Below, piece after piece: positions 1 to 64,000 of a DNA stretch of 64,000 bases. The stretch is from IMG/VR virus record IMGVR_UViG_3300032322_001765, positions 62,001 through 126,000 of that record. One strand, 5' to 3'. The notes under the pieces were generated by a model, which saw nothing but the letters and a program-made list of their open reading frames with translations, was not told where the DNA came from and ran no database searches. The first letter of the stretch is position 1. Each line of letters starts with the position of its first letter. A program made the translations under genes and the position numbers.

Positions 1-783
1 GTAATTGTGGCTACAACTTGGACAAGTAAATGCTAAAGGTTTAGCTTCAGTTGTTTTTCTTAGATTAATACTTTGGTCTTTGATGTTATCATATTCTTTC
101 TTTGGTATATTTTCTAAGAACTCTTTTATGTACTCTTTTTCAATGACTACGCTTTCAGGAGTTTTGACATATTCTACAATTTCTAATATCAATTCTGTTG
201 CAATCTCATTCATTTCTTTTACCAACTCAGACATTTTATTTTCTTTGTCAGCACCTTCTTCCATTTTTGATATTATTCCATATGCTCTTTGTAAGTCAAA
301 TTGTTTTTGACTGTTCTCATTTACTTTTGTATATGTCAATGGTTTAAATTTTATTTGCACATCGTTGTACACTGGATAAAGTTTGTTATAATCCCCTGGA
401 CTGAATTCATTAAGCATTCCAGTTAAATTTACATCGTATTTGGCGTCGTGATTGCAATTTGGGCATACAGTTAAAATTTCCATAGTAGACCCATTAGTTG
501 CAATTTTAATTGCTAGAAGAATAGGATCTAAATCAATTTGTAGTAATTGCCATGGGTCTTTGATATTTGGTGCGCAACTGTGAATAATTTCAACTACTGC
601 TTGGCCATTAAAAAGTGCATCTGGTGTGCGTGTGGTAATTTCGTCTAATGCAGTCATGGGAAAAATTGGTATCTCCCCTGACTCCGGTAAATCAATGGCA
701 TTTTCTTTATATCCTATGCCTTTGCTAGGTAATTTCAAATATAATGCAGGTTTACGAAAATAACTTTTTAGTGGGTTAGACAT
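1..783 (-). CDS. gp26: T4 gp26-like baseplate hub subunit (3' end runs off window)
   Basis: Not in the ORF track because it is truncated. My translation from ATG at 783 is MSNPLKSYFRKPALYLKLPSKG...EIPIFPMTALDEITTRTPDALFNGQAVVEIIHSCAP...CPNC...CPSC. The frame is open to base 1 and a GGAG SD lies upstream. The LxLPS/PMTxxDE/PDALxNG pattern and two CxxC motifs resemble gp26-family hub proteins of T4-like phages. Confidence 0.75.
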   Translation of the reverse strand, partial: MSNPLKSYFRKPALYLKLPSKGIGYKENAIDLPESGEIPIFPMTALDEITTRTPDALFNGQAVVEIIHSCAPNIKDPWQLLQIDLDPILLAIKIATNGSTMEILTVCPNCNHDAKYDVNLTGMLNEFSPGDYNKLYPVYNDVQIKFKPLTYTKVNENSQKQFDLQRAYGIISKMEEGADKENKMSELVKEMNEIATELILEIVEYVKTPESVVIEKEYIKEFLENIPKKEYDNIKDQSINLRKTTEAKPLAFTCPSCSHNY

Positions 784-3585: not shown

Positions 3586-3587
3586 TA

Positions 3588-3595
3588 GATAAATA
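3588..3595 (+). promoter_or_regulatory. Late-promoter-like GATAAATA
   Basis: Motif immediately upstream of the portal ATG; the same octamer occurs at 5383 and 9647. Confidence 0.55.
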
Positions 3596-3601
3596 TAAAT
3601 C

Positions 3602-8354: not shown

Positions 8355-9557
8355 ATGTCACAAGTTCTATTAGAAAACCGTTGGGACGAGACCAAAGAAG
8401 CCCTACTTGAAGGTCTTAAAGGTACTCGCCGTTCAACAATGAGTGTTATCTTAGAAAATACTCGCAAGCAGTTACTTTCAGAAAGTTCTGCAGGTACAAC
8501 AACCGCTGGTAATATTGCTACACTAAACCGTGTAATTCTACCAGTTATTCGTCGTGTGATGCCAACAGTTATCGCTAACGAATTAGTCGGTGTTCAGCCA
8601 ATGACTGGCCCAGTTGGTCAGATTCATACACTACGTGTACGCTATGCACAGTCATTAACTGACAACAGCGCAGCAAACACAAGCGTAACAGCAGGTGAAG
8701 AAGCATTAAGCCCATTCAAGATTGCTCAAGCTTACTCACGTACACCAGGTGGTGCAGCTAACCCAACAGTAACAAGCTACACAGCTAATGATACTGCTGC
8801 AATGGAAGGCAATGGCGGTCGTCAAATCAGCGTACAAATCTTACGTCAGGCTGTTGAAGCTAAGTCACGTAAGTTACAAGCACGTTGGACATTTGAAGCA
8901 GCACAAGATGCACAAAGTCAGCATGGTATTGATGTTGAAGCAGAAATTATGGCAGCACTTGCTCAAGAAATTACTGCTGAAATTGATCAAGAAATTCTAT
9001 TAAGCCTATCAACATTGGCTTCAACTGAATTTACATTCAACCAAGCTACTGTATCTGGTACTGCTACATTCGTTGGTGACGAACATGCTGCTTTAGCAGT
9101 TCTAATCAATCGTGTTGCAAACTTGATCGCACAACGTACTCGTCGTGGTGCTGGTAACTGGGCAGTTGTTTCCCCAGCAGCATTAACCGTACTACAGAGT
9201 GCTACAACTTCTGCATTTGCACGTACAACAGAAGGTACATTCGAAGCTCCAACAAATACTAAGTTCGTTGGTACACTAAATGGCGCAATGCGTATTTTTG
9301 TTAATACATATGCACCAGATACACAACCAGTATTAGTTGGTTACAAAGGTTCAAGCGAAACGGATGCAGCAGCATTCTACTGCCCATATATTCCATTAAT
9401 GAGCAGCGGTGTTGTTCTAGATCCATCAACATTCGAACCAGTAGTTAGCTTTATGACTCGTTATGGTTATATCGAGTTAACAAATACAGCGTCATCATTC
9501 GGTAACGCTGCTGACTACTTAGGTGAGATTGCTGTTCAGAACCTAACATTCCAATAA
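8355..9557 (+). CDS. gp23: Major capsid protein, T4 gp23 family
   Basis: Contains RRVMPTVIANELVGVQPMTGP, AKSRKLQARWTFEAAQD, EITAEIDQE, FYCPYIPL and FMTRYG. AGGAG SD upstream. Confidence 0.98.
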   Translation: MSQVLLENRWDETKEALLEGLKGTRRSTMSVILENTRKQLLSESSAGTTTAGNIATLNRVILPVIRRVMPTVIANELVGVQPMTGPVGQIHTLRVRYAQSLTDNSAANTSVTAGEEALSPFKIAQAYSRTPGGAANPTVTSYTANDTAAMEGNGGRQISVQILRQAVEAKSRKLQARWTFEAAQDAQSQHGIDVEAEIMAALAQEITAEIDQEILLSLSTLASTEFTFNQATVSGTATFVGDEHAALAVLINRVANLIAQRTRRGAGNWAVVSPAALTVLQSATTSAFARTTEGTFEAPTNTKFVGTLNGAMRIFVNTYAPDTQPVLVGYKGSSETDAAAFYCPYIPLMSSGVVLDPSTFEPVVSFMTRYGYIELTNTASSFGNAADYLGEIAVQNLTFQ

Positions 9558-44100: not shown

Positions 44101-45200
44101 CTTCTTCTACTGTATTTGGTTTGGGAACTGAAAATTTTACCTTTGAATGCTGGTTATACCCTACAGCAAATCCTGCAAATGGACCAGGTACTATTTTTGA
44201 TGCTCGTTCGGGAGTAGTAGCTGAAGGTTATGTAATTCGTGCGTTTAATGACAGAACGATTGGAATTTATACGTCTACAAATTCTTATGTTTATTCTACT
44301 GGAACTATTACTTTAAATGCGTGGAATCATATAGCACTAGTTCGAACATCAACGTCTACCAACGGTTTAGCTTTCTATATTAACGGAGCGGCTGCCGGAA
44401 CTGTTACTGTTAGTAGTAATTTGGGAACCTCATGGTCACCATTAATAGGTTACAATAGAGCAGGTTCAGGATTTGAATGGAATGGTTATATAAGTAATTT
44501 AAGACTTATTAAAGGTTCAGCATTCTATACATCCTCATTTTCGGCACCGGTTGCGCCACTAACTACTGTTGGAGCAACATTATTACTTAATGGCACTAAT
44601 AGTGGTATCATTGATTATACTAGCAAAAATAATTTAGAAACAGCTGGTAACGCACAACTATCATATAGTGTAAAAAAGTTTGGCAATGCGAGTATGAGTT
44701 TTGATGGAACGGGAGATTGGCTAATAATACCAAACAGCCAAAATTTTGTATTCGGCTTTGGTAATTGGACAATTGAACTGTGGGTAAGACCAGGAGCAAC
44801 AGGAAGACAGGGGTTTGTAGCATTAGAAAATGCTGCTGGTACAATCGTCCCATGGGAGTTAGGAATAAACAATGGAAACACATTCCGAGTGCTTGTGCAA
44901 ACATCTAGTGGACAGTATATAGTTGATGGAACAACATCTGTATCTACGAACACTTGGTATCACGTTGCAGCCGTAAGAAACGGATCTACAGTCACGCTTT
45001 ATGTGAACGGTACATCAGAGGGAACCCCGGCAAATGTTTCTACCAATGCTTTGGTTTCTGAAACATCTCCTATTTACGTCGGAACTTATAACTATGGATT
45101 TCCGTTGACCGGCTACATAGATGATCTACGTATCACTAAAGGCTATGCACGTTATACAAGTAATTTTACACCACCGACCTCAGCGTTCATTACGTATTAA
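41115..45200 (+). CDS. Adhesin: IPT/TIG + Ig-like + 5 LamG domains
   Basis: Paralogue of 30231 that lacks one Ig-like unit and the fourth LamG unit. MTTKISSDNI N-terminus. Confidence 0.85.
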   Translation: MTTKISSDNIQTATLNTLGGPKIQTITYPGDDTAADPAGGQTITLTGSGFEASASVVINTTAVGVVTVVSSTTITFTTPALSAGSYTLYVINPNGGTAIAVPGIQYSGTPTWSTAAGSLGNVYEAAAINNTLVATGDAPITYSLFSGTLPLTSTLNSSTGVLSGTADATASPTTYTFTIRATDAESQDTNRQFSLTINPDVVTWNSPANNITYTSNVNQAISNVTMSATSAAGYGITYTANSLPTGLSISGANITGTPTVVANSSSLITATASTSNRTATRTFNWVVQLGTDPYFNLTTLLLNSEASANAWISDSSTNSFAITVNGDTRPAAFSPYETVYSNQFDGTGDYLTVPTNAALDFGTGDFTVELWWYPTSLAADHGFLGATVGAGYDFVYRTSTGFNIARINVAFDNTFAYTAVVNTWYHVAYSRSGTNLRVFVNGVQIGSTATNSISYGTNGGTAVIGGSTNADRLLAGYMSNMRLVKGTALYTSNFIPSTTPLTAVSGTSLLTCQSNRLIDNSTNNFTLTRNGDVSVRNFGPFVETDLTTGSGYFDGTGDWLTATANSAFALGSGNFTIDGWIYPTASNGMIIDTRNTNGSASGFAVETDSSNQFLIYTDSAKLTAGTAPLNIWTFFAIVRSGSTITVYVNGVSAGSYSSSQNFSDNALVIASNEPKNKSLTGYLSNVRIVKGTAVYTTTFTPPTSPLTAIANTSLLTLQNRFGENNNRFVDTSGINNIITRNGNTTQGTFSPFSQTGWSNYFDGSSTLYFAGTPISTTQTNFTIEAWVYLTADPTFGGGVGQVVVDGGGLAGGSFWGFGLNTSRNIVFRWYDGASGFNCTSTSAVSLNQWAHIAVSVSSNAIKLFINGNLQSTTGTSTLTNRGGNQGNINVGRYATSDALYGYISNARIVTGAGLYSTSFTPSTTPLTTTVPSGTVAFLTAQSNRFVDTSTSNRTPVLAGSTSVQAFSPFVPTTEYSAATVGGSMYFDGTGDYLTVASSTVFGLGTENFTFECWLYPTANPANGPGTIFDARSGVVAEGYVIRAFNDRTIGIYTSTNSYVYSTGTITLNAWNHIALVRTSTSTNGLAFYINGAAAGTVTVSSNLGTSWSPLIGYNRAGSGFEWNGYISNLRLIKGSAFYTSSFSAPVAPLTTVGATLLLNGTNSGIIDYTSKNNLETAGNAQLSYSVKKFGNASMSFDGTGDWLIIPNSQNFVFGFGNWTIELWVRPGATGRQGFVALENAAGTIVPWELGINNGNTFRVLVQTSSGQYIVDGTTSVSTNTWYHVAAVRNGSTVTLYVNGTSEGTPANVSTNALVSETSPIYVGTYNYGFPLTGYIDDLRITKGYARYTSNFTPPTSAFITY

Positions 45201-50380: not shown

Positions 50381-53300
50381 ATGTTTTTCAAAGAATTTTT
50401 ATACAAAGCACAAACTCAAACTTTCACCTCCAATAAGCTTTTTACTTGGGGATTAGGCACATCTGGTCAATTAGGCTCTTACGGTGAATCAAATTTATCA
50501 CTAGTACAAGCAAGTGCCGGACAATCACACGTGCTTGCTATTACTAGTGATAGTAGATTGTTATCGTGGGGAGTTAACAGTGATGGTCAATTGGGCGATG
50601 GCACTACTATCAATAAATCTAATCCTGTACAGGTAGGTCAACCTGGTTGGAAAAAAGTAGCAGCAGGATTACTTCATAGTGTTGCAATTAGAAGTGACGG
50701 AACATTATTTTCATGGGGCTCAAATAGCGTTGGTCAATTAGGATTAAATTTAGGAACAGCGGCTACAGCTCGCCGGTCTAATCCAACACAAATTGGTTCA
50801 TTAGCAAACTGGATAGATATAAGTGGTAAAGCAACTACAACAATAGCATTAAATGAAGCTAGAGAACTGTATGCTTGGGGAAATAATAACTTAGGCCAAA
50901 TAGGTGTTAACGACACAATCAATAGATCAAGCCCCGTACAAATTGGAATAGGATTAAGTTGGTATAAAGTTTCTGTTGGTAGTCATGTTATGGGTGTTAC
51001 AGTGACTGGTGAACTATATGGTTGGGGAGCTAATGGGGCTGGTCAATTAGGAATAAATGCAACAAATAATAGAAGTAGCCCAACTCTAGTTGCTAATTCT
51101 GGTTATACTGATGTAAGCATAGGTGAAGGCCATACATTAGGATTAGCGTCAGGTAATTTATTGTTTGCTTGGGGAAATAACCTTGAAGGACAATTGGGTG
51201 ACGGTACAACTATATTAAAATCTAGTCCAGTACAAATAGGTTCAAGTTCTTTTACTTTTATTAGTGCAGCTTCTAGATTTAGTCAAGCAATAAGATTAGA
51301 TGGGGGATTGTTTGCTTGGGGATTAAACACAAGTGGTCAAATTGGAACTAATAATCAAATAGGTAGGTCAAGCCCAGTACAAGTAGGAACGAGTAGTTGG
51401 TCGCTAGTGGCAAGTAGTTTAGTGAGTGGTTGGGTTATAGGAACCACTTCTGACAAAACTGCATATGGATGGGGGGCGAACGGTTCAGGACAATTAGGTA
51501 ATAATACTACCATTACACGATCAAGCCCGACTTTAGTTGCAAGTTCAATTGTTGGTAATTATAGTGTGCCAATACAAGTAGGGACACTTTCATGGAATGC
51601 AATTTCAACTGGGGGTACACATACAATTGCATTAAGAAGTGATAATTTATTATTTGCATGGGGTTTAAACACTTCAGGCCAATTAGGTGACAATACAGCG
51701 ATAAGCAAGTCAAGCCCAGTGCAGATAGGTACAAGTAGTTGGACAGCAGTAACAGCAGGTGAAGCTGATAGTTCTTTTGCCATTAGAAGTGACAATACAT
51801 TATGGACTTGGGGTAACGTTACAACAAACTTAACTGGTGGAAATATATTAACAGAAAGTTGGCAACAGGTAACCAATAATGCAAACAGTTCAATTGGATT
51901 AAGAGCAGACGGTACATTATGGACATGGGGAGAAAATAGTTTTGGTCAAATTGGTAATAATACCACAATTAATAGATCAAGCCCTGTACAAATTGCAAGT
52001 GATAAGAGTTGGTTAAAATTAGGTGAAAATAACAATGTAAATAATGCGGTTGCGGCAATAGACTCAAATTATAAACTTTGGGTATGGGGTCGCAATAACA
52101 CTGGTCAACTAGCCACAGGTGATACGATTAATAGATCAAGTCCTGTATTAGTAATGAGTGATAAAAGCTGGAGTATGGTATCAGCAAGTAAAGGTATTAC
52201 TACTGATGGTAAACTTTGGAGTTGGGGAGCAGGTGCTACCGGTTTAATTGGAGACAACACCACCGTTGATAAATCAAGCCCAGTGCAGTTAAGTGTTGGT
52301 ACAAGTTTTACATTGGTTTCCGGAGCTTCAGACTCTAATCGTCATACATTTGCTATAAGCACAACTGGATTGTTGTATGGTTGGGGATTTAATAACACAG
52401 GACAATTAGGTTTAGGTAATACACTAAACAGATCCCAACCTACTTTATTGGCCTCCCCGTTCGACACGTTTTCGTGGAATTTCGTTAGTGTTGGCGGCAC
52501 TGATGGTACTGGCTCAACAGGTGGCCATACATTAGCTTTAAGAAATGATAATACTTTATATGTTTGGGGATTAAACAACGTAGGACAATTAGGTAATAAT
52601 ACTACTATCAACCGAAGCTCACCATTACAAGTATCATTTGTTAATATTCCACTAAGTTGGGCTACAGTGGCAGCTGCTGCTTCAAGATCAACTGCTTTAG
52701 ATTTTGATGGAAAATTATGGGGTTGGGGTATTAATACGACCTACGGCGCAGTTGGTGACTCTACAACAGTTAACAGATCATCCCCCGTAATATTAACAAG
52801 CACTGGTGTTACTTTTGCAAAAATTACGTCAGGATATTTTCACAGTAATGGAATAAGAGATGATGGATATTTATATGCATGGGGCGCAAATAATTTAGGA
52901 AACTTAGGAAATAATACAACAATTAATAGATCCTCACCGGCACTAATAAGTTCTATTCCAACAAACTTATCAAGTCCAGTGCAACTAGGTGTAGGTAAAT
53001 CAAATTGGAGTGCTATCCATTCTGGAACTTCAACACATGCAGCAATCGATGCGACAGGCGCGTTATACATTTGGGGAAGTAATGCGACAGGTCAATTAGG
53101 AAATAATAGTGTTTTTACTCGAACAGGATTAAGAGTACTTGACAATAATAGTTGGAATAGTGTCAGTGTTGGTGCAAGTCATGTGTTAGCCATACGAAAT
53201 AATAATCAATTGTATGCATGGGGCGGTAATGCAAGTTTTCAAATTGGCGATAATTCCAGTATTAATAAATCAAGTCCGATTCTCATTGATTCGGCTAGCT

Positions 53301-56300
53301 GGCTAAGTGTAAGTGCAGGTATTAACCACTCTCTTGCAATTAAATCCGGGGGAGGTTTATATGCATGGGGTAGTGGTTTATTTGGTCAAACCGGTATTAT
53401 TACAGACATTTATTCTTGGACACAAATAAATGCTGGTACAAACTTTGTTTTAGGTGTAAGACAAGATAGTACATTATGGGGTTATGGACTAAACACTAGT
53501 GGTCAACTAGGAGATAGCACTGCCGCTACAAAATCTAGCCCCACTCAAGTAGGTACGACTAGTTGGAGTAAAATTAGTGCAGGAGGCTCAAATGCACTTG
53601 GTATCACTATAGATGGTAAATTATTTTCTTGGGGTTCTGGATCAACATTTCAACTCGGTGATGGCACAACAATAAACAAATCTAGTCCAGTACAAATAGG
53701 AACCAGTAGCTGGTCACAAATTACTACAGGTACAGCACATAGTTTAGCTATTGACATAAATGGCAGATTATTTGGTTGGGGTACATCTACAGCATTAAAT
53801 GCTAGCACAGCTCCATTTAGTTGGACAGTTGTATCTGAAAATACATCACATGTAGCAGCAGTTCGAAGTGACGGATTGTTGTTTGTATGGGGTCTCAATA
53901 GTTCAGGACAAGTTGGAGACAATACAACTATTAATAAATCAAGTCCAGTACAAATAGGTACAAGTAGTTGGTTAACTGTAAGTAGTGGTGTCGATCATAC
54001 ATTAGCTATAACAAGCGATTATAGATTATTTGCCTGGGGCGGTAACACAGGTTTCCAACTAGGTGATAACACTACTATAAGTAAATCAAGTCCGGTATTA
54101 TTGTCAGGTCCTAGTTGGACAACGGTAGTCGCTGCAAATAGTTATAGTATGGCATTAAAATCTAATAATACATTATGGGCGTGGGGTTTAGGAACTTCAG
54201 GTCAATTAGGTACACTAACTGAACCTAAGTCATGGATAGAATTAAGTGCAGGCAATAGTACAAGTTTAGCGATCCGCAGTGATAATACCTTATGGGGATG
54301 GGGATTAAACACTAGTTTTCAAATTGGAAATGGCGCAAGTGTAACACAATCTAGTCCAGTACAAGTAGATAGTTCATTGAGTTGGATAAAAGTAAGCTCA
54401 GGCAATAATCATGGCTTAGCAATTACTAATACAGGAGTTTTATATGGCTGGGGAACAAATGCTCAAGGTCAAGTCGGGAATAATACATCAGTAAATCGTA
54501 GTTTACCTACCCTAGTTGATTCATCCGGTAGTTGGAGTGTAGTGAGTGCAGGTAACAGTTTCTCATTGGGAATAAAAGAAAATAAATTATACACTTGGGG
54601 ACAAAATAGCTTAGGTCAGTTAGGACAGGGTGATACTATAACAAGATTAAGCCCAACTCAAGTAGGATTGAACAATTGGACTGTAATAACTTCAAGCGAA
54701 ACTAATAATTATGCAGGTGCGATTGATAGTAGTAATAGATTATTTTTATGGGGAGTAAACACTAATTACCAATTAGGTGATGGCACAACAACAAATAGAA
54801 ATAGCCCTGTTGCAGTATTTGCTACTGGTACAAGTAGTTATGTTCAAGTAAGTGTAGGAGCAAGTCATACATTAGCAGTTCAAAGTGATGGCACATTGTG
54901 GGCCTGGGGGTCAAATACAAATTACATATTAGGATTAGGTGATACGAATATACGTTCAATACCAACACAAATGGGTTCAAGTAGTTGGACAAGTGTAAGT
55001 GCAGGAACAGATCATAGTATGGCAATCAAGTCTGACGGCACACTTTGGGGTTGGGGATTTAATCTTTTTGGACAAGTTGGTCTTGCAACAACTGTGTATT
55101 CTTGGACTCAAGTTGCAAACACTGGCCTCACAACACACGCTATTAGAAGTGATGGTTTACTATTTGGCTGGGGTTTAAATACTTCAGGGGAAATAGGGGA
55201 TAACTCGATTATTAATAAATCGAGTCCTGTACAAGTAGGAATCAAAACATGGAAAAAAGTTTATAATTTTACGGCTCTAGTTGGAAATCTTGCTTCTGTA
55301 TTAGCCATTGACAATAACGACAATTTGTTTGCTTGGGGCAATAACACATCCGGAAATTTAGGGGACAATACAGTAATTAGTAGATCCTCACCTGTTGCGG
55401 TGGTGATTAAAGGAACAGGTAGCTATACACAAGTCTTTGTTGGTCCGGCTACAGTTGCAATACAAAATGATGGAACACTTTGGTCATGGGGTGCTGGATC
55501 CTTTGTCGGAGACAACACAACCATTAGTAGATCAAGTCCAGTGCAGATAGGTTCTAGTACATGGTCTGCAGTAGGAGGTGCTTTATCCACTATTGCTGCT
55601 ATAGATGCAACTGGTAGATTATTTACTTGGGGTAACCAATCAGCATCGGGTAGTGGCTCGTTAGGCACAAACGATCTTATAAATAGATCAAGTCCTACAC
55701 TAGTTGCAGGCGCACCAGGTGCATTTAGTTGGACAAGTGTAAGTTCTGGTGGGGCTAATCATGTTTTAGCTATTCGTGAAAATGGAGCTGCGTACGGAAC
55801 GGGTTTAAATGCTCAAGGTCAGTTAGGTGACAACACTGCAACTAGCAAGTCAACTTTTACTTTAGTTTCTGGGACAACAAGTTTTACTCAAGTAAGGTGT
55901 GGATTTAGTTTTACAATAGCATCAGCAAGTGACGGCACGCTTTGGGGTTGGGGGAACAATGATTGGGGGCAACTTACTACTACTTTACCAATTGCTGCTA
56001 ACAGATCAAATCCGGTTCAAATAGTAGCGCCAGGCCCAACAGTGTATTCTACTGGTCAATATAATTTAGCCACAATCTATTCTAATGGTTTATTGTATAA
56101 TCAAGGATACAATTTAAATGGGATGCTAGGAGATGGAACAACAACTAGTAAGTCGCTACCTGTTCAAATCGGAAACAATCCGATCATAAATATATCAGTA
56201 CCCGTACAAATTGGTACCGGCAGCTGGAATCAAGTAAATGCAGGTACTCAATATACATTAGCAAGAGATACTAATAATGTTCTTTATGCTTGGGGTCAGG

Positions 56301-56326
56301 ATACATCAGGACAATTAGGTTTTTAA
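50381..56326 (+). CDS. Giant RCC1/BLIP-II-type beta-propeller repeat protein, part 1 (1981 aa, ~40 blades)
   Basis: Repeats of SW..VSAG..H.LAI..DG.L(F/Y/W).WG.N..GQLG..TT.N(R/K)SSPVQ(I/V)G. Ends in mid-repeat (GQLGF*). Confidence 0.9.
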   Translation: MFFKEFLYKAQTQTFTSNKLFTWGLGTSGQLGSYGESNLSLVQASAGQSHVLAITSDSRLLSWGVNSDGQLGDGTTINKSNPVQVGQPGWKKVAAGLLHSVAIRSDGTLFSWGSNSVGQLGLNLGTAATARRSNPTQIGSLANWIDISGKATTTIALNEARELYAWGNNNLGQIGVNDTINRSSPVQIGIGLSWYKVSVGSHVMGVTVTGELYGWGANGAGQLGINATNNRSSPTLVANSGYTDVSIGEGHTLGLASGNLLFAWGNNLEGQLGDGTTILKSSPVQIGSSSFTFISAASRFSQAIRLDGGLFAWGLNTSGQIGTNNQIGRSSPVQVGTSSWSLVASSLVSGWVIGTTSDKTAYGWGANGSGQLGNNTTITRSSPTLVASSIVGNYSVPIQVGTLSWNAISTGGTHTIALRSDNLLFAWGLNTSGQLGDNTAISKSSPVQIGTSSWTAVTAGEADSSFAIRSDNTLWTWGNVTTNLTGGNILTESWQQVTNNANSSIGLRADGTLWTWGENSFGQIGNNTTINRSSPVQIASDKSWLKLGENNNVNNAVAAIDSNYKLWVWGRNNTGQLATGDTINRSSPVLVMSDKSWSMVSASKGITTDGKLWSWGAGATGLIGDNTTVDKSSPVQLSVGTSFTLVSGASDSNRHTFAISTTGLLYGWGFNNTGQLGLGNTLNRSQPTLLASPFDTFSWNFVSVGGTDGTGSTGGHTLALRNDNTLYVWGLNNVGQLGNNTTINRSSPLQVSFVNIPLSWATVAAAASRSTALDFDGKLWGWGINTTYGAVGDSTTVNRSSPVILTSTGVTFAKITSGYFHSNGIRDDGYLYAWGANNLGNLGNNTTINRSSPALISSIPTNLSSPVQLGVGKSNWSAIHSGTSTHAAIDATGALYIWGSNATGQLGNNSVFTRTGLRVLDNNSWNSVSVGASHVLAIRNNNQLYAWGGNASFQIGDNSSINKSSPILIDSASWLSVSAGINHSLAIKSGGGLYAWGSGLFGQTGIITDIYSWTQINAGTNFVLGVRQDSTLWGYGLNTSGQLGDSTAATKSSPTQVGTTSWSKISAGGSNALGITIDGKLFSWGSGSTFQLGDGTTINKSSPVQIGTSSWSQITTGTAHSLAIDINGRLFGWGTSTALNASTAPFSWTVVSENTSHVAAVRSDGLLFVWGLNSSGQVGDNTTINKSSPVQIGTSSWLTVSSGVDHTLAITSDYRLFAWGGNTGFQLGDNTTISKSSPVLLSGPSWTTVVAANSYSMALKSNNTLWAWGLGTSGQLGTLTEPKSWIELSAGNSTSLAIRSDNTLWGWGLNTSFQIGNGASVTQSSPVQVDSSLSWIKVSSGNNHGLAITNTGVLYGWGTNAQGQVGNNTSVNRSLPTLVDSSGSWSVVSAGNSFSLGIKENKLYTWGQNSLGQLGQGDTITRLSPTQVGLNNWTVITSSETNNYAGAIDSSNRLFLWGVNTNYQLGDGTTTNRNSPVAVFATGTSSYVQVSVGASHTLAVQSDGTLWAWGSNTNYILGLGDTNIRSIPTQMGSSSWTSVSAGTDHSMAIKSDGTLWGWGFNLFGQVGLATTVYSWTQVANTGLTTHAIRSDGLLFGWGLNTSGEIGDNSIINKSSPVQVGIKTWKKVYNFTALVGNLASVLAIDNNDNLFAWGNNTSGNLGDNTVISRSSPVAVVIKGTGSYTQVFVGPATVAIQNDGTLWSWGAGSFVGDNTTISRSSPVQIGSSTWSAVGGALSTIAAIDATGRLFTWGNQSASGSGSLGTNDLINRSSPTLVAGAPGAFSWTSVSSGGANHVLAIRENGAAYGTGLNAQGQLGDNTATSKSTFTLVSGTTSFTQVRCGFSFTIASASDGTLWGWGNNDWGQLTTTLPIAANRSNPVQIVAPGPTVYSTGQYNLATIYSNGLLYNQGYNLNGMLGDGTTTSKSLPVQIGNNPIINISVPVQIGTGSWNQVNAGTQYTLARDTNNVLYAWGQDTSGQLGF

Positions 56327-59300
56327 ATGCCAACGAATTCACCAGTTTTATTAGGAAACAAATTACCATATAATTTACCAGAGCCTCAAAAAGTTGACAA
56401 CAATAGTTGGACACAAGTTAGTGCATTTAACGACTTTACAGTAGGGTTGAGGTCTAACAGTATCTTGTATGCATGGGGCACAAATAATTCTTACCAAATT
56501 GGTGATGGTACTACACTAAACAAATCAACACCAACTCAAATTTCAAATAGTAGTTTCTTAGTGGTAAGTGCGGGCTTTGATCATAGTGCTGCGATTACCA
56601 CTAACAATACACTATTTGTTTGGGGAAACAGTGCTAGTACTTTTGTTCAAACTATTAATTTCTCATGGACTAAAGTTGCAAGTTCAGGTAACCACACATT
56701 AGCTATTCGTAATGATAATACATTATGGACTTGGGGATTAAACACCGCAGGTCAATTAGGTGACGGTACAACTATTAATAAATCAAGTCCAGTACAAATT
56801 GGTTCAGGTACATGGAATGATATTAGTGCAGCAGTAAGTCATTCTGTAGCAATTGACAGTGATTACAAACTTTATGTTTGGGGTCAAAACAATGCCGGAC
56901 AAATAGGCGACAATACATCGATTAACAAATCTAGTCCCGTTCAAATAGGTTCGAATAGTTGGCTACAAGTTGCATCTGGTAATAGTTATACTGTTTCAAT
57001 AAACTCATTAAATGAAATGTTTGCGTGGGGTTTAAACACAAGTTATCAACTTGGGGATAGAACAGTTATTAACAAATCTAGCCCTGTACAAATAGGTTCT
57101 ACTTTTAGTTGGTCAAGTGTCAGTGCAGGCGTAGATCATAGTTTAGCAATAACAACCGATAATCAATTATATATTTGGGGTAATCCAGCTGGTGCAGGTA
57201 TACAAGAACCAACTACAATATATTCATGGACGCAAGTAACCGCAGGTAATATTTACACAACTGCTATTAGAAGTGATGGCAGTCTTTGGACATGGGGTAG
57301 GAACACTGAAGGACAATTAGGTCAAAACAATGTTATACTTCAAAGTAGTCCTGTACAGGTAGGTAATAGTAGTTACACACAAGTATCAGGCAAATGGAGT
57401 CATACAAGTGCAATTAAAGCTGACAGTACAATAATAGGATACGGTAGCAATACATACGGGGAGCTTGGTGATGGCACAACTATTGCAAAATCAAATCCAG
57501 TTACATTATCTTCTAGCTTTACAAACACAAGCTGGACTTCAGTTAGTGCAAGTGTAAATCACACAGCAGCAATTAGAAATGATGGTAGAATTTATATTTG
57601 GGGTTTAAATACATCAGGTCAATTAGGTGACAATACTGCAATAAGCAAATCAAATCCTGTTAGTTTAGCAAGCCCATTTGACACAAGTAGTTGGACACAA
57701 GTAGATTTAGGAAGAGACTTCGCCCTTGCAAGAAGATTAGATGGTAAATTATATGCATGGGGATTTAATGATTTAGGACAATTGGGAATTGTAAATTCTA
57801 CTTTCCCAATTGGTGGCGATACTTTAAACAGAAGCAATCCAGTATTAATCAGTGATAGTAGTTGGATTCAAGTAAGTGCAGGCTTTGATCATAGTTTAGC
57901 TATACGCTCGGACAATACATTGTGGACATGGGGTAGCAGTGTGGCCATAGGATTAGTGACAGAACCAATGTCATGGCTCGCTGTGTCAGGTGGTGCAACA
58001 CACACATTAGGTATAAGAGATAATGGCACGTTATGGACATGGGGTACTAATGATCAAGGTCAATTAGGCAATTCAACAACTGTTATACGCTTAAGCCCAG
58101 TTCAAATCGGATTAACTAGATGGGCAAGTGTAAGTGCAGGTAGTAGTTATTCTCACGCTATTGATCAAGCTGGTTTATTATATGCATGGGGTTTAAATTC
58201 AAGTGGACAGTTAGGCGATAATTCATCGATTAATAAATCAAGCCCAGTACAGATAGGATCTAGCAGCTGGATAGAAGTAACTGATGGGGTTAATCATACA
58301 CTAGCAATTGATGCAGATGGTAGATTATATGGATGGGGTCAATTTACTAGTGGTCAAACAGGTGTATACGACGAAATTTATTCTTGGACACAAATCACTA
58401 GTGGATTGGGATTACGCACAGATGGTACCTTATGGGCTTGGGGGCAATTAACAGGTGATGGTACTACAATTATTAGGTCTAGTCCAGTACAGATAGGGTC
58501 AAGTGATTGGTCCTCAATAGCGCCTATATTTTCTATGATTGATCCAAAAGCTGCATTAAAAACAAACGGTACGCTTTGGATGTGGGGAACTAATGCACTA
58601 GGACAATTAGGACAAAATGATACCATTAATAGAAGTTCACCTGTACAGGTTGCAGGAAGTTGGAATCAAATAAGTGTGCAATCTGGTCATGCTGCTGCAA
58701 GAAATGTAAGCAATATTATCTATACTTGGGGCAAAAATGAAGCAGGCCAATTAGGTGATGGCACTACAATCGATAAATCAAGTCCTGTTTTATTGAGTGG
58801 TGCGTTTGGTACTACTAGTTGGACATCTGTTAGTGTTGGCTGGTCTCATACCGCAGCTTTAAGAAATGATAACATAATTTATATTTGGGGCTGGAACAAT
58901 CAGGGGCAGTTAGGTACTGGTCTTACCACAAGTAGATCCAATCCAGTAACTTTAGACGGAGCATTTGCTACAAGTAGTTTTGTAGCTGTAAGCAGTGGTG
59001 CTTTACACACACTTGCCGTCAGATCCGATAGTAGACTAGTAGCATGGGGATATAATTTAGAAGGTTCTTTGGGTGACAATACAACTATTAATAAGTCAAC
59101 ACCTGTAGTAATTGGAACTAGTAGTTGGTCAGTAGTTACCGCTGCACGAACTAATAATCTAGCAGTCACTACAACAGGCACACTTTGGTTTTGGGGTGCT
59201 GATGGAGGTAGTGGCTCATCAGCTCAAAATGCCACTATTAACAGAAGCGCGCCAACACAAATAGGAGCATTAACTAATTGGGCATCAGCCGGTGTAGTTT

Positions 59301-62300
59301 CAGCAATAAACAATTTAGGTGTGGCATTTGTTTGGGGCTCGGGTGGATCAGCCAACACTTCAAATACCTACTTACTTAATACAACAGTTGACGCATCAAG
59401 CCCCGTGCAAGTTGGCGGATTTAGATGGCCCCCTACGAAATACTATAGTCCACAACAAGTAGGAACAAGTAGTTTTTCTTTAGTAAGTGCAGGTAGTTCT
59501 TATTCAATGGGTATTAACGCAGAGGATTTATTATATGGCTGGGGAGTAAACAATTCAGGTCAGCAAGCAGATGGAACTACAGTAGCAAAATCAAGTCCGG
59601 TACAAATCACAACAAGTAGTTATATTAGTGTAAGTGCTGGATTCGATCATGTACTTGCTATTGCAAGTAATGGAACATTATGGACATGGGGAAATAGTGC
59701 AGCTATAGGATTAGTAGTTCAACCTCAATCGTGGTCAGAAATATCAAGTGGCAGTAGTCATACACTAGCAATACGTAGTGATGGTGCATTATTTGCCTGG
59801 GGTATCGGAACATCCGGTCAATTAGGTAACACTTTAGCAATTTCAAATTCAAGCCCAGTGCAAGTAGGAACAAGCAGTTGGAGTCAAGTTAAAGCCGGAA
59901 CCAACGTTAGTTTAGCAATAGACACAAATAATCGATTGTTTGGATGGGGACTTAATACTTCAGCACAACTTGGCATCGGTGTAATTACAAATAGATCAAG
60001 TCCTGTGCTAATAACTTCTGGAAGTTGGATAGGATTAGCAGCCGGTGGCACACATACATTTGCAATTGATTCAACTAATAAACTTTATGGCTGGGGAAAT
60101 AATGATTCAGGTCAAATCATACCATATGGAAGTTATTTTCCAACAGGCTACAGTCCTGTAAGTGCAGGTGGAGGATTCTTTGCTGCGATAAGAACATCTG
60201 ATTCAGGATTATTACTTTGGGGTAGAAATAACTTTGGTCAATTAGGTCAAGGAAATACAATTGACAGATCCAATCCTATACAGTTAGGTTCAAATAGTTG
60301 GAAACAAGTAGCAGCAGGTACAAGTTTTATTTCTGCTATTAGAAGTGACGACACATTATGGACATGGGGTTTAAACACCTCAGGTCAATTAGGAGATAAC
60401 ACATCAATAAGCAAATCAAGCCCTGTGCAAGTTGCTGGCTCATGGCTTTCAATATCAGGTGGTGCGACCCACGCATTAGGTGTTAAAATAGATAATACTC
60501 TTTGGAGTTGGGGTTCAAACGATGTTGGGCAATTAGGTGATAGTACCGTAGTAAATAAATCTAGTCCAGTACAAATTGGTACTAGAAGTTGGTCAAGTGT
60601 AAACGCTGGAAATAGTTATAGTTTAGCAATCGATACAACAGGTATCGTTTATGGTTGGGGTTGGAATACAAGCGGTCAATTAGGCGACGGCACAACTACG
60701 AATAGAAATTCTCCAGTATTACTAGCATCACCTTTTAATACTACTTCATTTTCTCAAGTCACTGCTGGATTTTCACATTCCTTAGGATTTACTACTTCTG
60801 GTTTATTATATTCATGGGGAGGTAATAGTGTAGGAGAATTAGGTTTAGGTCTTATTACTAGTAGATCAAACCCAACACAAATTACTCAATATTCTGGATT
60901 ATTGCCTCAAAATGGTAGTTGGTCTTTTATTTACGCAGGACAACAAATTTCTACTGCTATCAACAATAATAATTTATATGTTTGGGGATCAGGCGCTAGT
61001 GGACAATTAGGATTAGGCGATACTATTAATAGATCAATACCGGTACAAACAGGTATAGGATATAGTTGGAAAGCTGCTGCACTAGAAGTAGCAACCAATT
61101 TGGGTGCAGGATATTTAAGGTCAGATAATTCAGTTTGGGTTACTGGAAATAATACATTTGGTAACTTAGGCAATAGCACAACTGTTAATAGGTCTGCACC
61201 TGTGATAGTTGGTTCGACAAGCATATCAACTCCAGTACAAGTGGGTACAAGTAGTTGGAGTCAAATTAGCGCAGGTGCAAGTTACAGTGCAGGTATAGAT
61301 AGTTTAGGAAAACTATATACTTGGGGATTAAATAATACCTATCAATTAGGTAATAATACAACAGTCGATAGAAATGACGTTATCAATCAATTAACTAATA
61401 GTAGTTGGACAAGTGTAAGTACTGGTTTGAATCACGTTTTAGCTATAGCATCAAATAATAGTTTACATGCATGGGGATCGGCTGCGGCTGTTGGATTGTC
61501 TAATGTCACCGCACTATCATGGAGTACAATTGCAAGTGGTGGACAATCATCACACCTTGCTGCTATTAGAAGTGATGGTGCATTATTTACTTGGGGTTTA
61601 AACACTAATGGCCAATTAGGTGATGGTACAACAATAAACAAATCAAGTCCAACACAAATAAGCGGAACTATTAGCTGGACTTCGGTAGCAGTAGATTTAT
61701 CAAATACAATGGCTATCAGATTGGGCGGCACTTTATTTGTTTGGGGAGGTAACGCTAGTGGTCAGCTAGGATTAAGTGATACTATTAATAGATCAAATCC
61801 AGTATTGTTAGATTATAATAGTTGGAGTCAAATATCTGTAAACACATCTCATACAGCAGGTATTAGAAGTAATCAACTGTATGTATGGGGAAATAATGTA
61901 AGTGGTCAAATTGGTGACAATACAACCATCAATAAATCAAGTCCTGTACAGGTAACTGGTAGTTGGAATTCAGTTAGCGCCGGCGCTCAATATACTATAG
62001 GTATAAACAATTCTAGTTTATTATTTGTTTGGGGCGTCAACGCTGCCTTCCAATTAGGTACAGGTAACACGGTTAGCAGATCAAGTCCTGTACAGATTGC
62101 AACAGGAACTAGTTATTCAATAATTTCTGCAGGACCAACACATGCGGTTGCAATAGATACAACTAGTAAGCTATGGACATGGGGACAACAATCAAGCGTA
62201 GGGATTGATGTTAATTCATGGACTCAGGTTAGTATAGGTAATCAGTTTGTTCTAGCTATAAGAAATGACGGAAGATTATTTGCTTGGGGAGTCAATTCGT

Positions 62301-63480
62301 CTGGTCAATTAGGATTGGGTGATACGATACTAAGGTCTAGTCCTGTATTAGTGGGTAATAATAGTTGGTCGGCAATTTCAGCGGCTATTGGTGGAAATAA
62401 TAGCGCAGGTATTGCAAGCGACGGTAAATTATTTACTTGGGGTAATAATAATACGGGACAATTAGGTGATGGCACAACAATAAACAAATCGAGTCCAGTA
62501 CAGATTTCCTCAGGATCAAGCTTTAGTCTTGTTGCAGCAGGCCCAGGATTCCTGTTGGCTGCATCTACTAATTATGCATTATTTACTTCAGGAGGTAATA
62601 GTGTTGGACAATTAGGTGATGGCACAACAATAAACAAATCTACTCCAGTACAAATAACTGATCCGTCAGTTCAAAGTTGGATTTTTATAAGTGCAGGAAC
62701 TAGCTATAGTGGTGGCATAGATAATTTAGGAAAGTTATATACTTGGGGAACAAATTTCCTTGGTATTTTAGGTCATGGCGACACAATTAATCGTTCAAAA
62801 CCAACTATAGTATCAGGATCGACTAGTTGGTCTAAAGTAAGTGCAGGTGGTGTTAACACATTAGGTATTACTAATTTAGGAGCACTATATGCATGGGGAC
62901 AGAATAACGTAGGACAAATAGGTGATGGCACTACTATAAACAAATCTAGCCCAGTACAAATAGGTTCAAGTAGTTGGTCCGCAGTTGCAGCTAGTGATAG
63001 TGTATCTATGGCTATTAGGTCAGATAATACTCTATGGACTTGGGGGCATAATAGTGTAGGACAATTGGGTATAGGTCTTACTACAAATAGATCAAGTCCG
63101 GTGCAAGTTGTAGCTGGCGCACAATGGTCTTCAATAGCTAGTTCTGGTAATAATACTATGGTAGCTATCTCAATAGCTACTGGAACTAGTAATAAACTTT
63201 ACTTGTGGGGCTTCAATGCCTCAGGACAATTAGGTACAGGAGACACAGTAAATCGTAGTAGCCCCACATTACTAGCAGGAACTACAGGAACTGTTATACC
63301 AACTAAAATTTTAAATTATCAAAGCTTTAGCCAAGTAAGCACTGGTATATCTTACACTATAGCTAAAAGAGCTAATGACAATGTTTTAATGGGATGGGGT
63401 ATTAATACTTCTGGACAGTTAGGAGATAATACCGCAACACAAGCAAGAAGGAGTAATCCTACATTAATTGGATATAGAAC
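50438..63480 (+). repeat. RCC1-like repeat array (~88 blades over two ORFs)
   Basis: Counted by hand from the xWG..GQLG cores: about 40 in ORF 50381 and about 48 in ORF 56327. Confidence 0.88.
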
Positions 63481-64000
63481 TTTTGTAGACGCATCAGAAA
63501 ATAATATTACCTCAGTAACATTCACTGGCTCACCAAAAAATGTTGATTTTAGTCCTTTTGCAAATCAGCCATATAATACTGTCACTAGTGGTGGTAGCAC
63601 ACAATTTAGTGGATTAGGTGATGTCATTAACTGTGGCACAAACTCAGTATTTGCATTTGGTACAGGTCCGTTCTGTATTGAGTTTTGGTGCTATAATAAT
63701 ATATTGAAAGCTGTAGCAGCAGTAACAACCAATCCATCTGTCACAAGTGTTACAGATTCATTCATTGTGGGATGGGACGCCGCTGGTTCATATAACGTAG
63801 TGGTAGGAAATACTACATTTGCTTCTTCTCCGGGATTTATAAAGACTAATGTTTGGCAACATATTGTTTGTTGTCGTGATAGTTCCAATAATGTGGCTGT
63901 GTTTATTGATGGTGTGCGAGGATCTCCCGGCGTCGTTGCTAGCAACTTAGTCAGAACAACATTAGGAATAGGAGATTTCCCTACAACCCCATCTCAAAAT
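56327..64000 (+). CDS. Giant RCC1-repeat protein, part 2 (>2558 aa, ~48 blades, then a LamG domain; runs off window)
   Basis: Not in the ORF track because it has no stop in the window. The ATG directly follows the TAA of part 1 in the same frame. I translated it through to 64000 without meeting a stop. From ~63482 it reads FVDASENN..FSPF..FAFGTGPFCIEFW..WQHIVCCRD..VFIDG (LamG). Confidence 0.88.
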   Translation, partial: MPTNSPVLLGNKLPYNLPEPQKVDNNSWTQVSAFNDFTVGLRSNSILYAWGTNNSYQIGDGTTLNKSTPTQISNSSFLVVSAGFDHSAAITTNNTLFVWGNSASTFVQTINFSWTKVASSGNHTLAIRNDNTLWTWGLNTAGQLGDGTTINKSSPVQIGSGTWNDISAAVSHSVAIDSDYKLYVWGQNNAGQIGDNTSINKSSPVQIGSNSWLQVASGNSYTVSINSLNEMFAWGLNTSYQLGDRTVINKSSPVQIGSTFSWSSVSAGVDHSLAITTDNQLYIWGNPAGAGIQEPTTIYSWTQVTAGNIYTTAIRSDGSLWTWGRNTEGQLGQNNVILQSSPVQVGNSSYTQVSGKWSHTSAIKADSTIIGYGSNTYGELGDGTTIAKSNPVTLSSSFTNTSWTSVSASVNHTAAIRNDGRIYIWGLNTSGQLGDNTAISKSNPVSLASPFDTSSWTQVDLGRDFALARRLDGKLYAWGFNDLGQLGIVNSTFPIGGDTLNRSNPVLISDSSWIQVSAGFDHSLAIRSDNTLWTWGSSVAIGLVTEPMSWLAVSGGATHTLGIRDNGTLWTWGTNDQGQLGNSTTVIRLSPVQIGLTRWASVSAGSSYSHAIDQAGLLYAWGLNSSGQLGDNSSINKSSPVQIGSSSWIEVTDGVNHTLAIDADGRLYGWGQFTSGQTGVYDEIYSWTQITSGLGLRTDGTLWAWGQLTGDGTTIIRSSPVQIGSSDWSSIAPIFSMIDPKAALKTNGTLWMWGTNALGQLGQNDTINRSSPVQVAGSWNQISVQSGHAAARNVSNIIYTWGKNEAGQLGDGTTIDKSSPVLLSGAFGTTSWTSVSVGWSHTAALRNDNIIYIWGWNNQGQLGTGLTTSRSNPVTLDGAFATSSFVAVSSGALHTLAVRSDSRLVAWGYNLEGSLGDNTTINKSTPVVIGTSSWSVVTAARTNNLAVTTTGTLWFWGADGGSGSSAQNATINRSAPTQIGALTNWASAGVVSAINNLGVAFVWGSGGSANTSNTYLLNTTVDASSPVQVGGFRWPPTKYYSPQQVGTSSFSLVSAGSSYSMGINAEDLLYGWGVNNSGQQADGTTVAKSSPVQITTSSYISVSAGFDHVLAIASNGTLWTWGNSAAIGLVVQPQSWSEISSGSSHTLAIRSDGALFAWGIGTSGQLGNTLAISNSSPVQVGTSSWSQVKAGTNVSLAIDTNNRLFGWGLNTSAQLGIGVITNRSSPVLITSGSWIGLAAGGTHTFAIDSTNKLYGWGNNDSGQIIPYGSYFPTGYSPVSAGGGFFAAIRTSDSGLLLWGRNNFGQLGQGNTIDRSNPIQLGSNSWKQVAAGTSFISAIRSDDTLWTWGLNTSGQLGDNTSISKSSPVQVAGSWLSISGGATHALGVKIDNTLWSWGSNDVGQLGDSTVVNKSSPVQIGTRSWSSVNAGNSYSLAIDTTGIVYGWGWNTSGQLGDGTTTNRNSPVLLASPFNTTSFSQVTAGFSHSLGFTTSGLLYSWGGNSVGELGLGLITSRSNPTQITQYSGLLPQNGSWSFIYAGQQISTAINNNNLYVWGSGASGQLGLGDTINRSIPVQTGIGYSWKAAALEVATNLGAGYLRSDNSVWVTGNNTFGNLGNSTTVNRSAPVIVGSTSISTPVQVGTSSWSQISAGASYSAGIDSLGKLYTWGLNNTYQLGNNTTVDRNDVINQLTNSSWTSVSTGLNHVLAIASNNSLHAWGSAAAVGLSNVTALSWSTIASGGQSSHLAAIRSDGALFTWGLNTNGQLGDGTTINKSSPTQISGTISWTSVAVDLSNTMAIRLGGTLFVWGGNASGQLGLSDTINRSNPVLLDYNSWSQISVNTSHTAGIRSNQLYVWGNNVSGQIGDNTTINKSSPVQVTGSWNSVSAGAQYTIGINNSSLLFVWGVNAAFQLGTGNTVSRSSPVQIATGTSYSIISAGPTHAVAIDTTSKLWTWGQQSSVGIDVNSWTQVSIGNQFVLAIRNDGRLFAWGVNSSGQLGLGDTILRSSPVLVGNNSWSAISAAIGGNNSAGIASDGKLFTWGNNNTGQLGDGTTINKSSPVQISSGSSFSLVAAGPGFLLAASTNYALFTSGGNSVGQLGDGTTINKSTPVQITDPSVQSWIFISAGTSYSGGIDNLGKLYTWGTNFLGILGHGDTINRSKPTIVSGSTSWSKVSAGGVNTLGITNLGALYAWGQNNVGQIGDGTTINKSSPVQIGSSSWSAVAASDSVSMAIRSDNTLWTWGHNSVGQLGIGLTTNRSSPVQVVAGAQWSSIASSGNNTMVAISIATGTSNKLYLWGFNASGQLGTGDTVNRSSPTLLAGTTGTVIPTKILNYQSFSQVSTGISYTIAKRANDNVLMGWGINTSGQLGDNTATQARRSNPTLIGYRTFVDASENNITSVTFTGSPKNVDFSPFANQPYNTVTSGGSTQFSGLGDVINCGTNSVFAFGTGPFCIEFWCYNNILKAVAAVTTNPSVTSVTDSFIVGWDAAGSYNVVVGNTTFASSPGFIKTNVWQHIVCCRDSSNNVAVFIDGVRGSPGVVASNLVRTTLGIGDFPTTPSQN

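Follow-up and report, generated by a model that had tools for sequence, protein, structure and literature searches.

Results

Layout of the RCC1 region

The stretch of DNA analysed here, referred to as the window, comprises 64,000 nucleotides (bases 62001-126000) of the single 220,867-bp virus record IMGVR_UViG_3300032322_001765 (CheckV completeness 61%), of which the sequence past base 64000 of the window could be read as well. At its 3' end lie two open reading frames (ORFs), ORF A and ORF B, which share the same frame with a single TAA between them and which we propose to encode a protein of RCC1-type beta-propellers recursively nested into one another and decorated with LamG domains. The features around the window end are as follows (window coordinates; residue numbers here and below are those of ORF B unless stated otherwise):

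50381..56326, + strand: ORF A, 1,981 residues, RCC1 blades only (from the blade map and propeller assignment)
56324..56329, + strand: in-frame TAA, directly abutting the ATG of ORF B, within a blade's GQLG loop (..YAWGQDTSGQLGF*MPTNSPVLLG..)
56327..64000, + strand: ORF B, residues 1-2558 of 4,525; continues to window-equivalent 69904 (genome 131904)
61520..62218, + strand: host propeller P8, blades 1-5, residues 1732-1964 (from the blade map)
62219..63271, + strand: leaf propeller P9, seven contiguous full blades, residues 1965-2315, the deepest level of the tree (depth 9)
63272..63325, + strand: orphan closer of 18 residues, LAGTTGTVIPTKILNYQS (..TVIPTKIL..), residues 2316-2333
63326..63469, + strand: P8 blade 6, FSQVSTG..RRSNPTLIG, residues 2334-2381
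63470..64000, + strand: LamG unit 1 (PF13385), residues 2382-2610, i.e. 229 residues, 177 of them within the window; ends at window-equivalent 64156

ORF A provides the six opening blades of the root propeller and, besides these, three guest propellers in full and the first parts of three others. In ORF B, blade 5 of P8 (residues 1930-1957) is what we term an opener, namely a blade without the GQLG loop and the fourth strand, and is followed by a junction of 7 residues. The orphan closer behind the leaf propeller is modelled as the fourth strand missing from this opener, and P8 blade 6, which follows it, covers positions 1-45 of the blade hidden Markov model (HMM) with 52.5 bits. Within the last 309 residues encoded in the window, PF00415, which together with PF25390 represents the blade motif families, scores above its cut-off (E 2.1e-13), and the RCC1 region matches PHROGs 4219, 7220 and 16766 ('regulator of chromosome condensation') at E 1e-65. 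In PHROGs, these three RCC1-repeat families of phages are assigned to the category 'DNA, RNA and nucleotide metabolism' because of the eukaryotic name, an assignment that is probably misleading for RCC1 proteins of a virion block.

The sequence ceases to be RCC1-like at residue 2382 (window 63470), where LamG unit 1 is inserted between blades 6 and 7 of P8. As a whole, this unit matches Laminin_G_3 (PF13385) with E 2.5e-10 and 41.1 bits against a cut-off of 27.6, while a Pfam search with the window-only piece returned RCC1 alone and no LamG match, because the window cuts the unit at residue 2558. Over about 220 residues the unit aligns with the repeated units of three neighbouring giant ORFs that start at window positions 24671, 30231 and 41115 (phmmer E 8e-25 to 1e-18), and the alignments begin at unit residue 4-5, corresponding to window ~63479-63482. 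A first-pass annotation, made from the letters of the window, had read one more blade at this place and then, from about 63482, a LamG unit of the type found in these three adhesins, and had concluded that RCC1 and LamG modules are fused. The blade map, the PF13385 score and the starts of the phmmer alignments all agree with that reading, and the complete LamG unit does follow the blade in one chain within ORF B.

Sequence beyond the window

The same annotation had made a quantitative forecast for downstream sequence that it had not seen, namely 17 further blades in groups of 1+2+2+2+3+2+4+1, an orphan closer ahead of each group except the first, and a total of 15 x 7 = 105 blades. The genome gives exactly these groups with the closers exactly so placed, and the HMM count over ORF A and ORF B is 105. 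In residues of ORF B, the return path reads:

2611-2653: blade, then closer
2674-2718: blade; 2719-2950: LamG unit 2; 2951-2996: blade, then closer
3019-3061: blade; 3062-3316: LamG unit 3; 3317-3361: blade, then closer
3385-3429: blade; 3430-3669: LamG unit 4; 3670-3713: blade, then closer
3732-3876: three blades, then closer
3893-3936: blade; 3937-4176: LamG unit 5; 4177-4222: blade, then closer
4242-4431: four blades, then closer
4456-4500: blade; 4504-4525: terminal half blade

RCC1 blades thus continue after the LamG unit, and their counts complete the open sets to seven. A third in-frame ORF, which had been envisaged as a possible source of blades, proved unnecessary, as the RCC1 blades are confined to the two abutting ORFs and none were found in other ORFs of the record. 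What had not been foreseen is that there are five LamG units and not one, nor where the four additional ones are located: in each case the LamG splits a two-blade group on the return path and comes to lie between blade 6 and blade 7 of the host. All five exceed the PF13385 cut-off of 27.6 bits (41.1, 78.4, 63.4, 47.0 and 54.5 bits in order). The earlier designation of LamG as a tip module is not entirely fitting, since the units sit on internal host propellers along the return path and not on leaves. The relatedness of the LamG units does not agree with host type, with unit 1 being closest to unit 2 despite the differing opener patterns of their hosts.

Blade order and stack parse

Blades were detected with a 45-position HMM built from the protein's own repeats. 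In strand order, a full blade consists of W..VSAG, HTLAI and LYAWG, the GQLG loop, and SPVQI, i.e. four strands. The tokeniser counts 105 blade units in ORF A and ORF B, and the spacing between blade starts is trimodal with an additional fourth class: 35-41 residues for the 14 openers, which lack the GQLG loop and the SPVQI strand; 44-57 residues for full blades; 60-69 residues for a blade plus an extra strand, the closer; and 274-298 residues for the five blades that are each followed by a LamG unit.

For the parse, ORF A, an X for the stop and ORF B were concatenated, with no alternative genetic code, and each opener was treated as a push and each closer as a pop on a stack. The resulting bracket string, in which brackets stand for openers and closers and L for LamG, is

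(------)-(------)--(--(--(-----(------))-(---(----(--(------)-(--(------)-(----(------)L)L)L)L)--)L)---)$

The brackets balance, each of the 15 propellers receives seven blades, no more and no fewer, and the tree reaches a depth of nine. Between one and three entire guest propellers are inserted into nine of the 15 rings, five of which contain a LamG unit in addition, and the other six rings are leaves. Along the chain, the openers fall on linear blades 1, 10, 20, 23, 26, 32, 42, 46, 51, 54, 63, 66, 75 and 80 and the closers after blades 8, 17, 39, 40, 61, 73, 87 and onward, and neither set shows a period of seven. When 14 openers and 14 closers were placed at random 300,000 times, 19,851 placements were valid, none of which reached 15 seven-bladed propellers out of 15 (best 7/15).

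The numbering obtained from the parse is also reflected in the blade sequences. The first three strands of all blades were compared in BLOSUM units per site, and full blades of interrupted propellers were found to be more alike to those blades of the six leaves that have the same nested ordinal (1-7), with a difference of +0.178 against a null of 0.012 +/- 0.037 that was reached in 0 of 2000 shuffles. Under linear mod-7 numbering the corresponding value is -0.03.

Structure predictions

Two host propellers were approached by structure prediction. The first AlphaFold2 target that gave a usable model was a LamG-free host with its guest, ORF A residues 1285-1981, with an alignment of 111 rows. 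It has a mean predicted local distance difference test score (pLDDT) of 89.1 and a predicted template modelling score (pTM) of 0.59, and its pLDDT falls below 50 in two places only, at model residues 282-286, the predicted opener junction, and at 650-659, the predicted closer linker. From these breaks, the host can be delimited to residues 1-281 plus 660-697 and the guest to residues 287-649. UVR8 matches the model with Z 39.8 and a root-mean-square deviation of 2.3 A over 300 residues (30% identity), and the alignment covers model residues 1..697 and UVR8 residues 17..370, i.e. all seven UVR8 blades. Alignments to the six pre-guest blades end at residue 285, such as that of HERC2 RLD3 (1..285), and further matches form a second set that covers the guest (287..690). 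Given the span of the UVR8 alignment, the single post-guest blade closes the host ring in this model.

For P8, the host at the window end, the two flanks of the guest were folded as separate chains, with residues 1732-1964 (blades 1-5) as chain 1 and residues 2316-2653 (closer, blade 6, LamG unit 1 and blade 7) as chain 2. The interaction prediction score from aligned errors (ipSAE) was 0.86 (runs 0.85, 0.90 and 0.86), and the best of three controls gave 0.01; 58 of 80 solved complexes attain a value of 0.86, as do 2 of 110 mismatched pairs, a calibration that is approximate since the alignments were our own. Between runs, at least 95% of the contacts are the same, and the partner chain that holds LamG unit 1 has a pLDDT of at least 87. 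At the modelled interface, blade 5 makes contact with both the closer and blade 6, blade 7 and the final strand do so with blade 1, and the LamG residues (chain 2, 67-294) lie outside.

The P8 model further places the closer (chain 2 residues 10-13) antiparallel to the opener strand LWTWG (chain 1 residues 217-221), the expected error being close to 1 A, and brings the W..VSAG strands of blade 5 and blade 6 into contact. From this pairing and these contacts it follows that W..VSAG is the inner strand and SPVQI the outer, fourth strand. With this strand register, the guests would be located in the loop between the third and fourth strands (the GQLG loop), the closer would be the fourth strand of the opener, and LamG would sit between blades 6 and 7. 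An opposite register, with SPVQI as the inner strand, the guests between blades and LamG inside a blade, had been considered and was abandoned in view of the same pairing and contacts. In both models, seven four-stranded blades are predicted to close one ring.

The junction between ORF A and ORF B

In a relative with about 55% identity to ORF B in its second ORF, a TAA-ATG is found at the same loop in two samples (..YAWGQDNFGQLGL*MPINSPVILG..), and at least ten other cluster representatives begin with MPxNSPV.. or end with ..GQLG[FLI], with a Met codon after the stop every time. The record contains 27 tRNA genes, clustered at genome 181015-188007, and no suppressor tRNA is among them; TAA is the commonest stop and ends 93 of 134 ORFs. 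Stop-codon recoding was ruled out on the last two grounds. Since the junction is conserved, no suppressor tRNA is present and TAA is the main stop, the split between ORF A and ORF B is real and conserved.

According to the parse, two blades of ORF A take their fourth strands from the N-terminal end of ORF B, and the blades of propellers Q1, Q4, Q5 and Q6 are divided between the two ORFs. The products are most likely two co-assembling polypeptides that share these four propellers, and programmed or low-level readthrough of the TAA is possible. As for the root propeller, the half blade at the C-terminus of ORF B (YSEVSAG-NSFTGARA) and the KLFTWG strand at the N-terminus of ORF A would appear to complete its ring.

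Relatives in metagenomes

A word search with the region gave 1,443 scored candidates, 818 of them giant proteins at E <= 0.001, and the following refers to the best 120 of the 818. All are RCC1-repeat proteins, many with LamG in addition, and those with a source name are annotated solely as 'alpha-tubulin suppressor-like RCC1 family protein'. Many of them give deeply nested bracket strings, two examples reaching depths of 11-12, and among closed propellers seven is by a wide margin the commonest blade count (250 versus 71 for the next); in about 30 of the 120 no opener is seen. Across the family, blade 5 is the most frequent site of openers, and inserts of LamG size occur after blades 1, 3 or 6. 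At least 100 blade-LamG-blade modules align over at least 90% of the module at the window end. The architecture hence recurs in many metagenomic relatives.

An IMG/VR scan for closer orthologues yielded one identical copy, with all other matches at most 46% identical. The copy lies on the contig IMGVR_UViG_3300033571_018919 (127,168 bp). Cultured phages, such as cyanophage S-SRM01 and Clostridioides (C.) difficile phages, also carry RCC1 proteins, none of which covers 80% of the query.

Genomic setting

The record derives from a tailed phage, and the window encodes a portal protein (phrog_213, E 3e-109) as well as the following features:

8355-9557, + strand: major head protein (phrog_138, E 2e-99)
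24671-29752, 30231-35393 and 41115-45200, + strand: three giant LamG/He_PIG proteins, each with 5-6 tandem Laminin_G_3 units plus He_PIG/TIG immunoglobulin-like domains

The major head protein is 65-68% identical to its counterparts in the jumbo phages Vibrio phage 2.275.O and Pseudomonas phage PA5oct, which places the phage near that jumbo-phage group. ORF B is also listed on a 300,542-bp contig in the protein collection, so that the phage genome probably measures at least 300 kb. From position 847 to the end of the window all large ORFs are on the + strand. Several of them show weak matches to tail-fibre PHROGs, and the RCC1 ORFs lie downstream of these, of the portal and of the major head protein. 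The RCC1 region itself has only a weak 'tail protein' match (phrog_20500, E 9e-13), and the LamG units of the three giant ORFs match PHROG families annotated as baseplate wedge or virion structural protein. The structural block also holds an ORF of 2,642 residues (window 12568-20496, + strand) that matches no Pfam family at E <= 0.001. Elsewhere in the record, genome 26929-44019 (- strand; window-equivalent -35071 to -17981) contains an open frame of 5,696 codons from stop to stop.

On the 3' side of ORF B, genome 131965-141968 opens with an ORF of 571 residues that has no Pfam family match and one PHROG methyltransferase match (E 1e-11). It is followed by GT25 and GT2 glycosyltransferases, two methyltransferases, a PfkB kinase and a class I ribonucleotide reductase. 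The gene order here, including the glycosyltransferases, is the same in the ~55%-identical relative. These genes could be a glycan-modifying cassette that adjoins the lectin-bearing genes.

Discussion

A nested-propeller model

Taking these data together, we consider it highly probable that the region at the window end is the turning point of a recursively nested beta-propeller protein, encoded in the virion-gene block of a jumbo tailed phage, with 15 seven-bladed rings on nine levels and five LamG grafts along the return path, and most likely made of two chains. Such nesting is supported by the balanced brackets, the seven blades at each level, the connectors in the models and the placement of both P8 flanks in one ring. 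In the model that we propose, the chain would exit each of the 14 opener blades after the third strand, with a short junction in place of the loop, and would build a complete guest propeller that may itself be opened. It would then return via the orphan closer strand, which would complete the opener blade, and continue with the next blade of the host. The chain of such a tree would run to the deepest leaf (residues 1965-2315), after which the hosts would close in reverse order, and ConA-like LamG domains, the first at window 63470, would be set between blades 6 and 7 of five hosts on the way back. The root ring would be completed last, by strands from both ORFs.

Several points weigh against this model or limit its reach. 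The post-return blades taken by themselves give a modest positional signal, a level that 78 of 2000 random assignments also reached. The thresholds of the tokeniser were adjusted to this very protein, and the relatives show many blade counts other than seven. The AlphaFold2 model of residues 1732-2653 (P8, P9 and LamG unit 1), computed with a 6-row alignment of architecture-matched relatives, was unusable (pLDDT 48, pTM 0.37), and a deeper MAFFT alignment of the same residues had to be dropped as it forced blades onto LamG columns. In the ORF A model, the closer is of low confidence and is not drawn as a strand. Furthermore, the predictor may close a ring from any 5-blade and 2-blade RCC1 fragments, in which case the split-chain fold would speak for compatibility and not for specificity. 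The grammar, the blade counts, the identity of the LamG units, the conserved architecture and, at the level of models, ring closure in two host propellers are demonstrated, and from these we infer how the entire tree folds and that two chains assemble, while the proposed function is read from genomic context.

Alternative explanations

One could imagine, as an alternative, that the protein is a string of beads, i.e. 15 consecutive propellers of seven adjacent blades in which openers and closers are linker variants. The product of 15 x 7 is 105 under a linear arrangement too, and the roughly 30 relatives without opener tokens are possibly linear. Consecutive rings would, however, call for a period of seven in the opener or closer positions, which is absent, and for positional homology under linear numbering, which is not seen (-0.03). 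They would further predict a break of the ORF A model near residue 340, whereas the breaks are at 282-286 and 650-659 and UVR8 aligns to residues 1-285 plus the last blade, and they leave the pattern of 1, 2, 2, 2, 3, 2, 4, 1 blades unexplained. We regard such a linear arrangement as extremely unlikely. Another objection would be that the bracket grammar is the evolutionary footprint of cassette insertions and that not all levels fold as closed seven-bladed rings, with open outer hosts, blade swapping or larger rings instead. In favour of this, the models cover two host propellers, Q6 and P8, the ORF A model is of low confidence at the closer, and the outer four propellers are split over two ORFs. 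However, if closure were not needed, selection would not keep all 15 counts at seven in this protein, nor seven as the mode in diverged relatives, and both hosts that were tested close as predicted, so that we think this explanation very unlikely.

Lastly, the TAA could be a sequencing or assembly error, a recent pseudogenising mutation or a site of designed readthrough, with a single chain of 6,507 residues as the true product. The two ORFs are indeed in frame and gapless, and the stop lies inside an otherwise normal blade loop. On the other hand, the ~55%-identical relative keeps the TAA-ATG at the same loop in two samples, the cluster representatives with the MPxNSPV start or the GQLG[FLI] end (at least ten) all have a Met codon after the stop, and the set of 27 tRNAs has no suppressor in a genome in which TAA ends 93 of 134 ORFs. 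A single chain as the true product hence appears very improbable to us, and we prefer the nested tree built from two chains.

Possible function and significance

If the nested tree folds as proposed, the product would be a large, rigid and branched virion appendage with glycan-binding capacity. Its role is most likely to display lectin-like domains for the binding of host surface glycans, a prediction based on genomic context, namely the virion-gene block, the three adjoining giant LamG/He_PIG proteins, with LamG units that match baseplate or virion structural families, and the glycosyltransferase genes 3' of ORF B in this phage and in its relative.

Domain insertion is common, and it is almost always limited to one level with a small guest in a larger host. 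Here, if our reading is true, a fold of 350 residues would be inserted into copies of itself eight times over, with branching, and no host ring could be closed before everything inside it has been made. This raises the questions whether folding proceeds co-translationally from the innermost leaf outward, how cassettes are inserted into one specific loop, and how two chains become interlocked. The grammar of openers, closers and counting to seven can be applied to the hundreds of giant 'RCC1 family' proteins of phage metagenomes that are now annotated only as repeats. To phage biology, the protein suggests a virion appendage of a new kind, branched and bearing lectins. The forecast of the downstream blades, moreover, represents a clean case in which a hypothesis drawn from sequence only survived a risky quantitative test.

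Comparison with known systems

RCC1, UVR8, the RLDs of HERC2 and RPGR have the blade motif (PF00415, PF25390) and the seven four-stranded blades per ring in common with the phage protein. These known domains are single rings of sequence-contiguous blades, whereas nine of the 15 phage rings are interrupted by guests. No link to Ran or to UV sensing is seen for the phage protein, the context of which is a virion block. Ran guanine-nucleotide exchange, or another activity of the named family members, is not expected of a phage virion protein, and a common fold need not mean a common function. The LamG grafts, in turn, consist of the same ~220-residue Laminin_G_3 unit as the phage LamG-repeat virion and baseplate proteins (e.g. 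PHROGs 13163, 701 and 8510) and the three giant LamG/He_PIG ORFs nearby, in all of which the units are arranged in tandem, in contrast to the single grafts inside rings of the RCC1 protein.

In integrin alpha, the I-domain is inserted between blades 2 and 3 of a seven-bladed propeller. As in the phage protein, a ligand-binding domain is thereby grafted into an inter-blade connection from which it projects, although the integrin graft is a VWA domain, whereas the phage grafts are LamG (ConA-like) domains placed between blades 6 and 7 and repeated on five nested hosts. Completion of propellers in trans is represented by Sec13 with Nup145C or Sec31 and by Seh1 with Nup85, where one blade is donated to an open six-bladed ring. 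This is a further likeness if ORF A and ORF B are separate chains, with the difference that there one blade and one ring are involved, while the phage would have four shared rings and single-strand donations at the N-terminus of ORF B.

With regard to recursion, a 2026 survey of 48,551 domain insertion events found a predominance of single-level insertions, with inserts that were consistently smaller than the hosts, and the complex nest that it highlights consists of SBHM domains in the Si3 region of the cyanobacterial RNA polymerase beta' subunit (RpoC2), with six levels (PMC13114784). In both this nest and the phage protein, like is inserted into like recursively. The RpoC2 unit, however, is a small sandwich-barrel, whereas the phage unit is a propeller of about 350 residues nested over nine levels, i.e. 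by eight successive insertions. The phage tree further differs in that it is branched, with up to three guests per host, that its guests are far larger than the remainder of the host, and that it is spread over two ORFs. We are evenly divided for and against a stronger proposal, namely that each of the two ORFs yields a giant chain of its own and that neither folds without the other, giving an interlocked heterodimer of ~700 kDa with four chimeric propellers including the root. The 15-propeller tree, which at nine levels would be deeper than the six-level case of the survey, would then be a natural 'fractal' scaffold for phage lectin display.

A search of the literature on nested or inserted propellers and on RCC1 in jumbo phages retrieved nothing relevant, and the nested RCC1 propeller architecture appears to be undescribed. 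Overall, the components themselves, RCC1-like propellers on the one hand and Laminin_G_3 inserts on the other, are ordinary, and it is the topology that is unusual. Among recursive domain insertions, the protein is set apart by its large unit, its nine levels and its branching, and also by regularly placed LamG grafts and by a tree divided between two ORFs.

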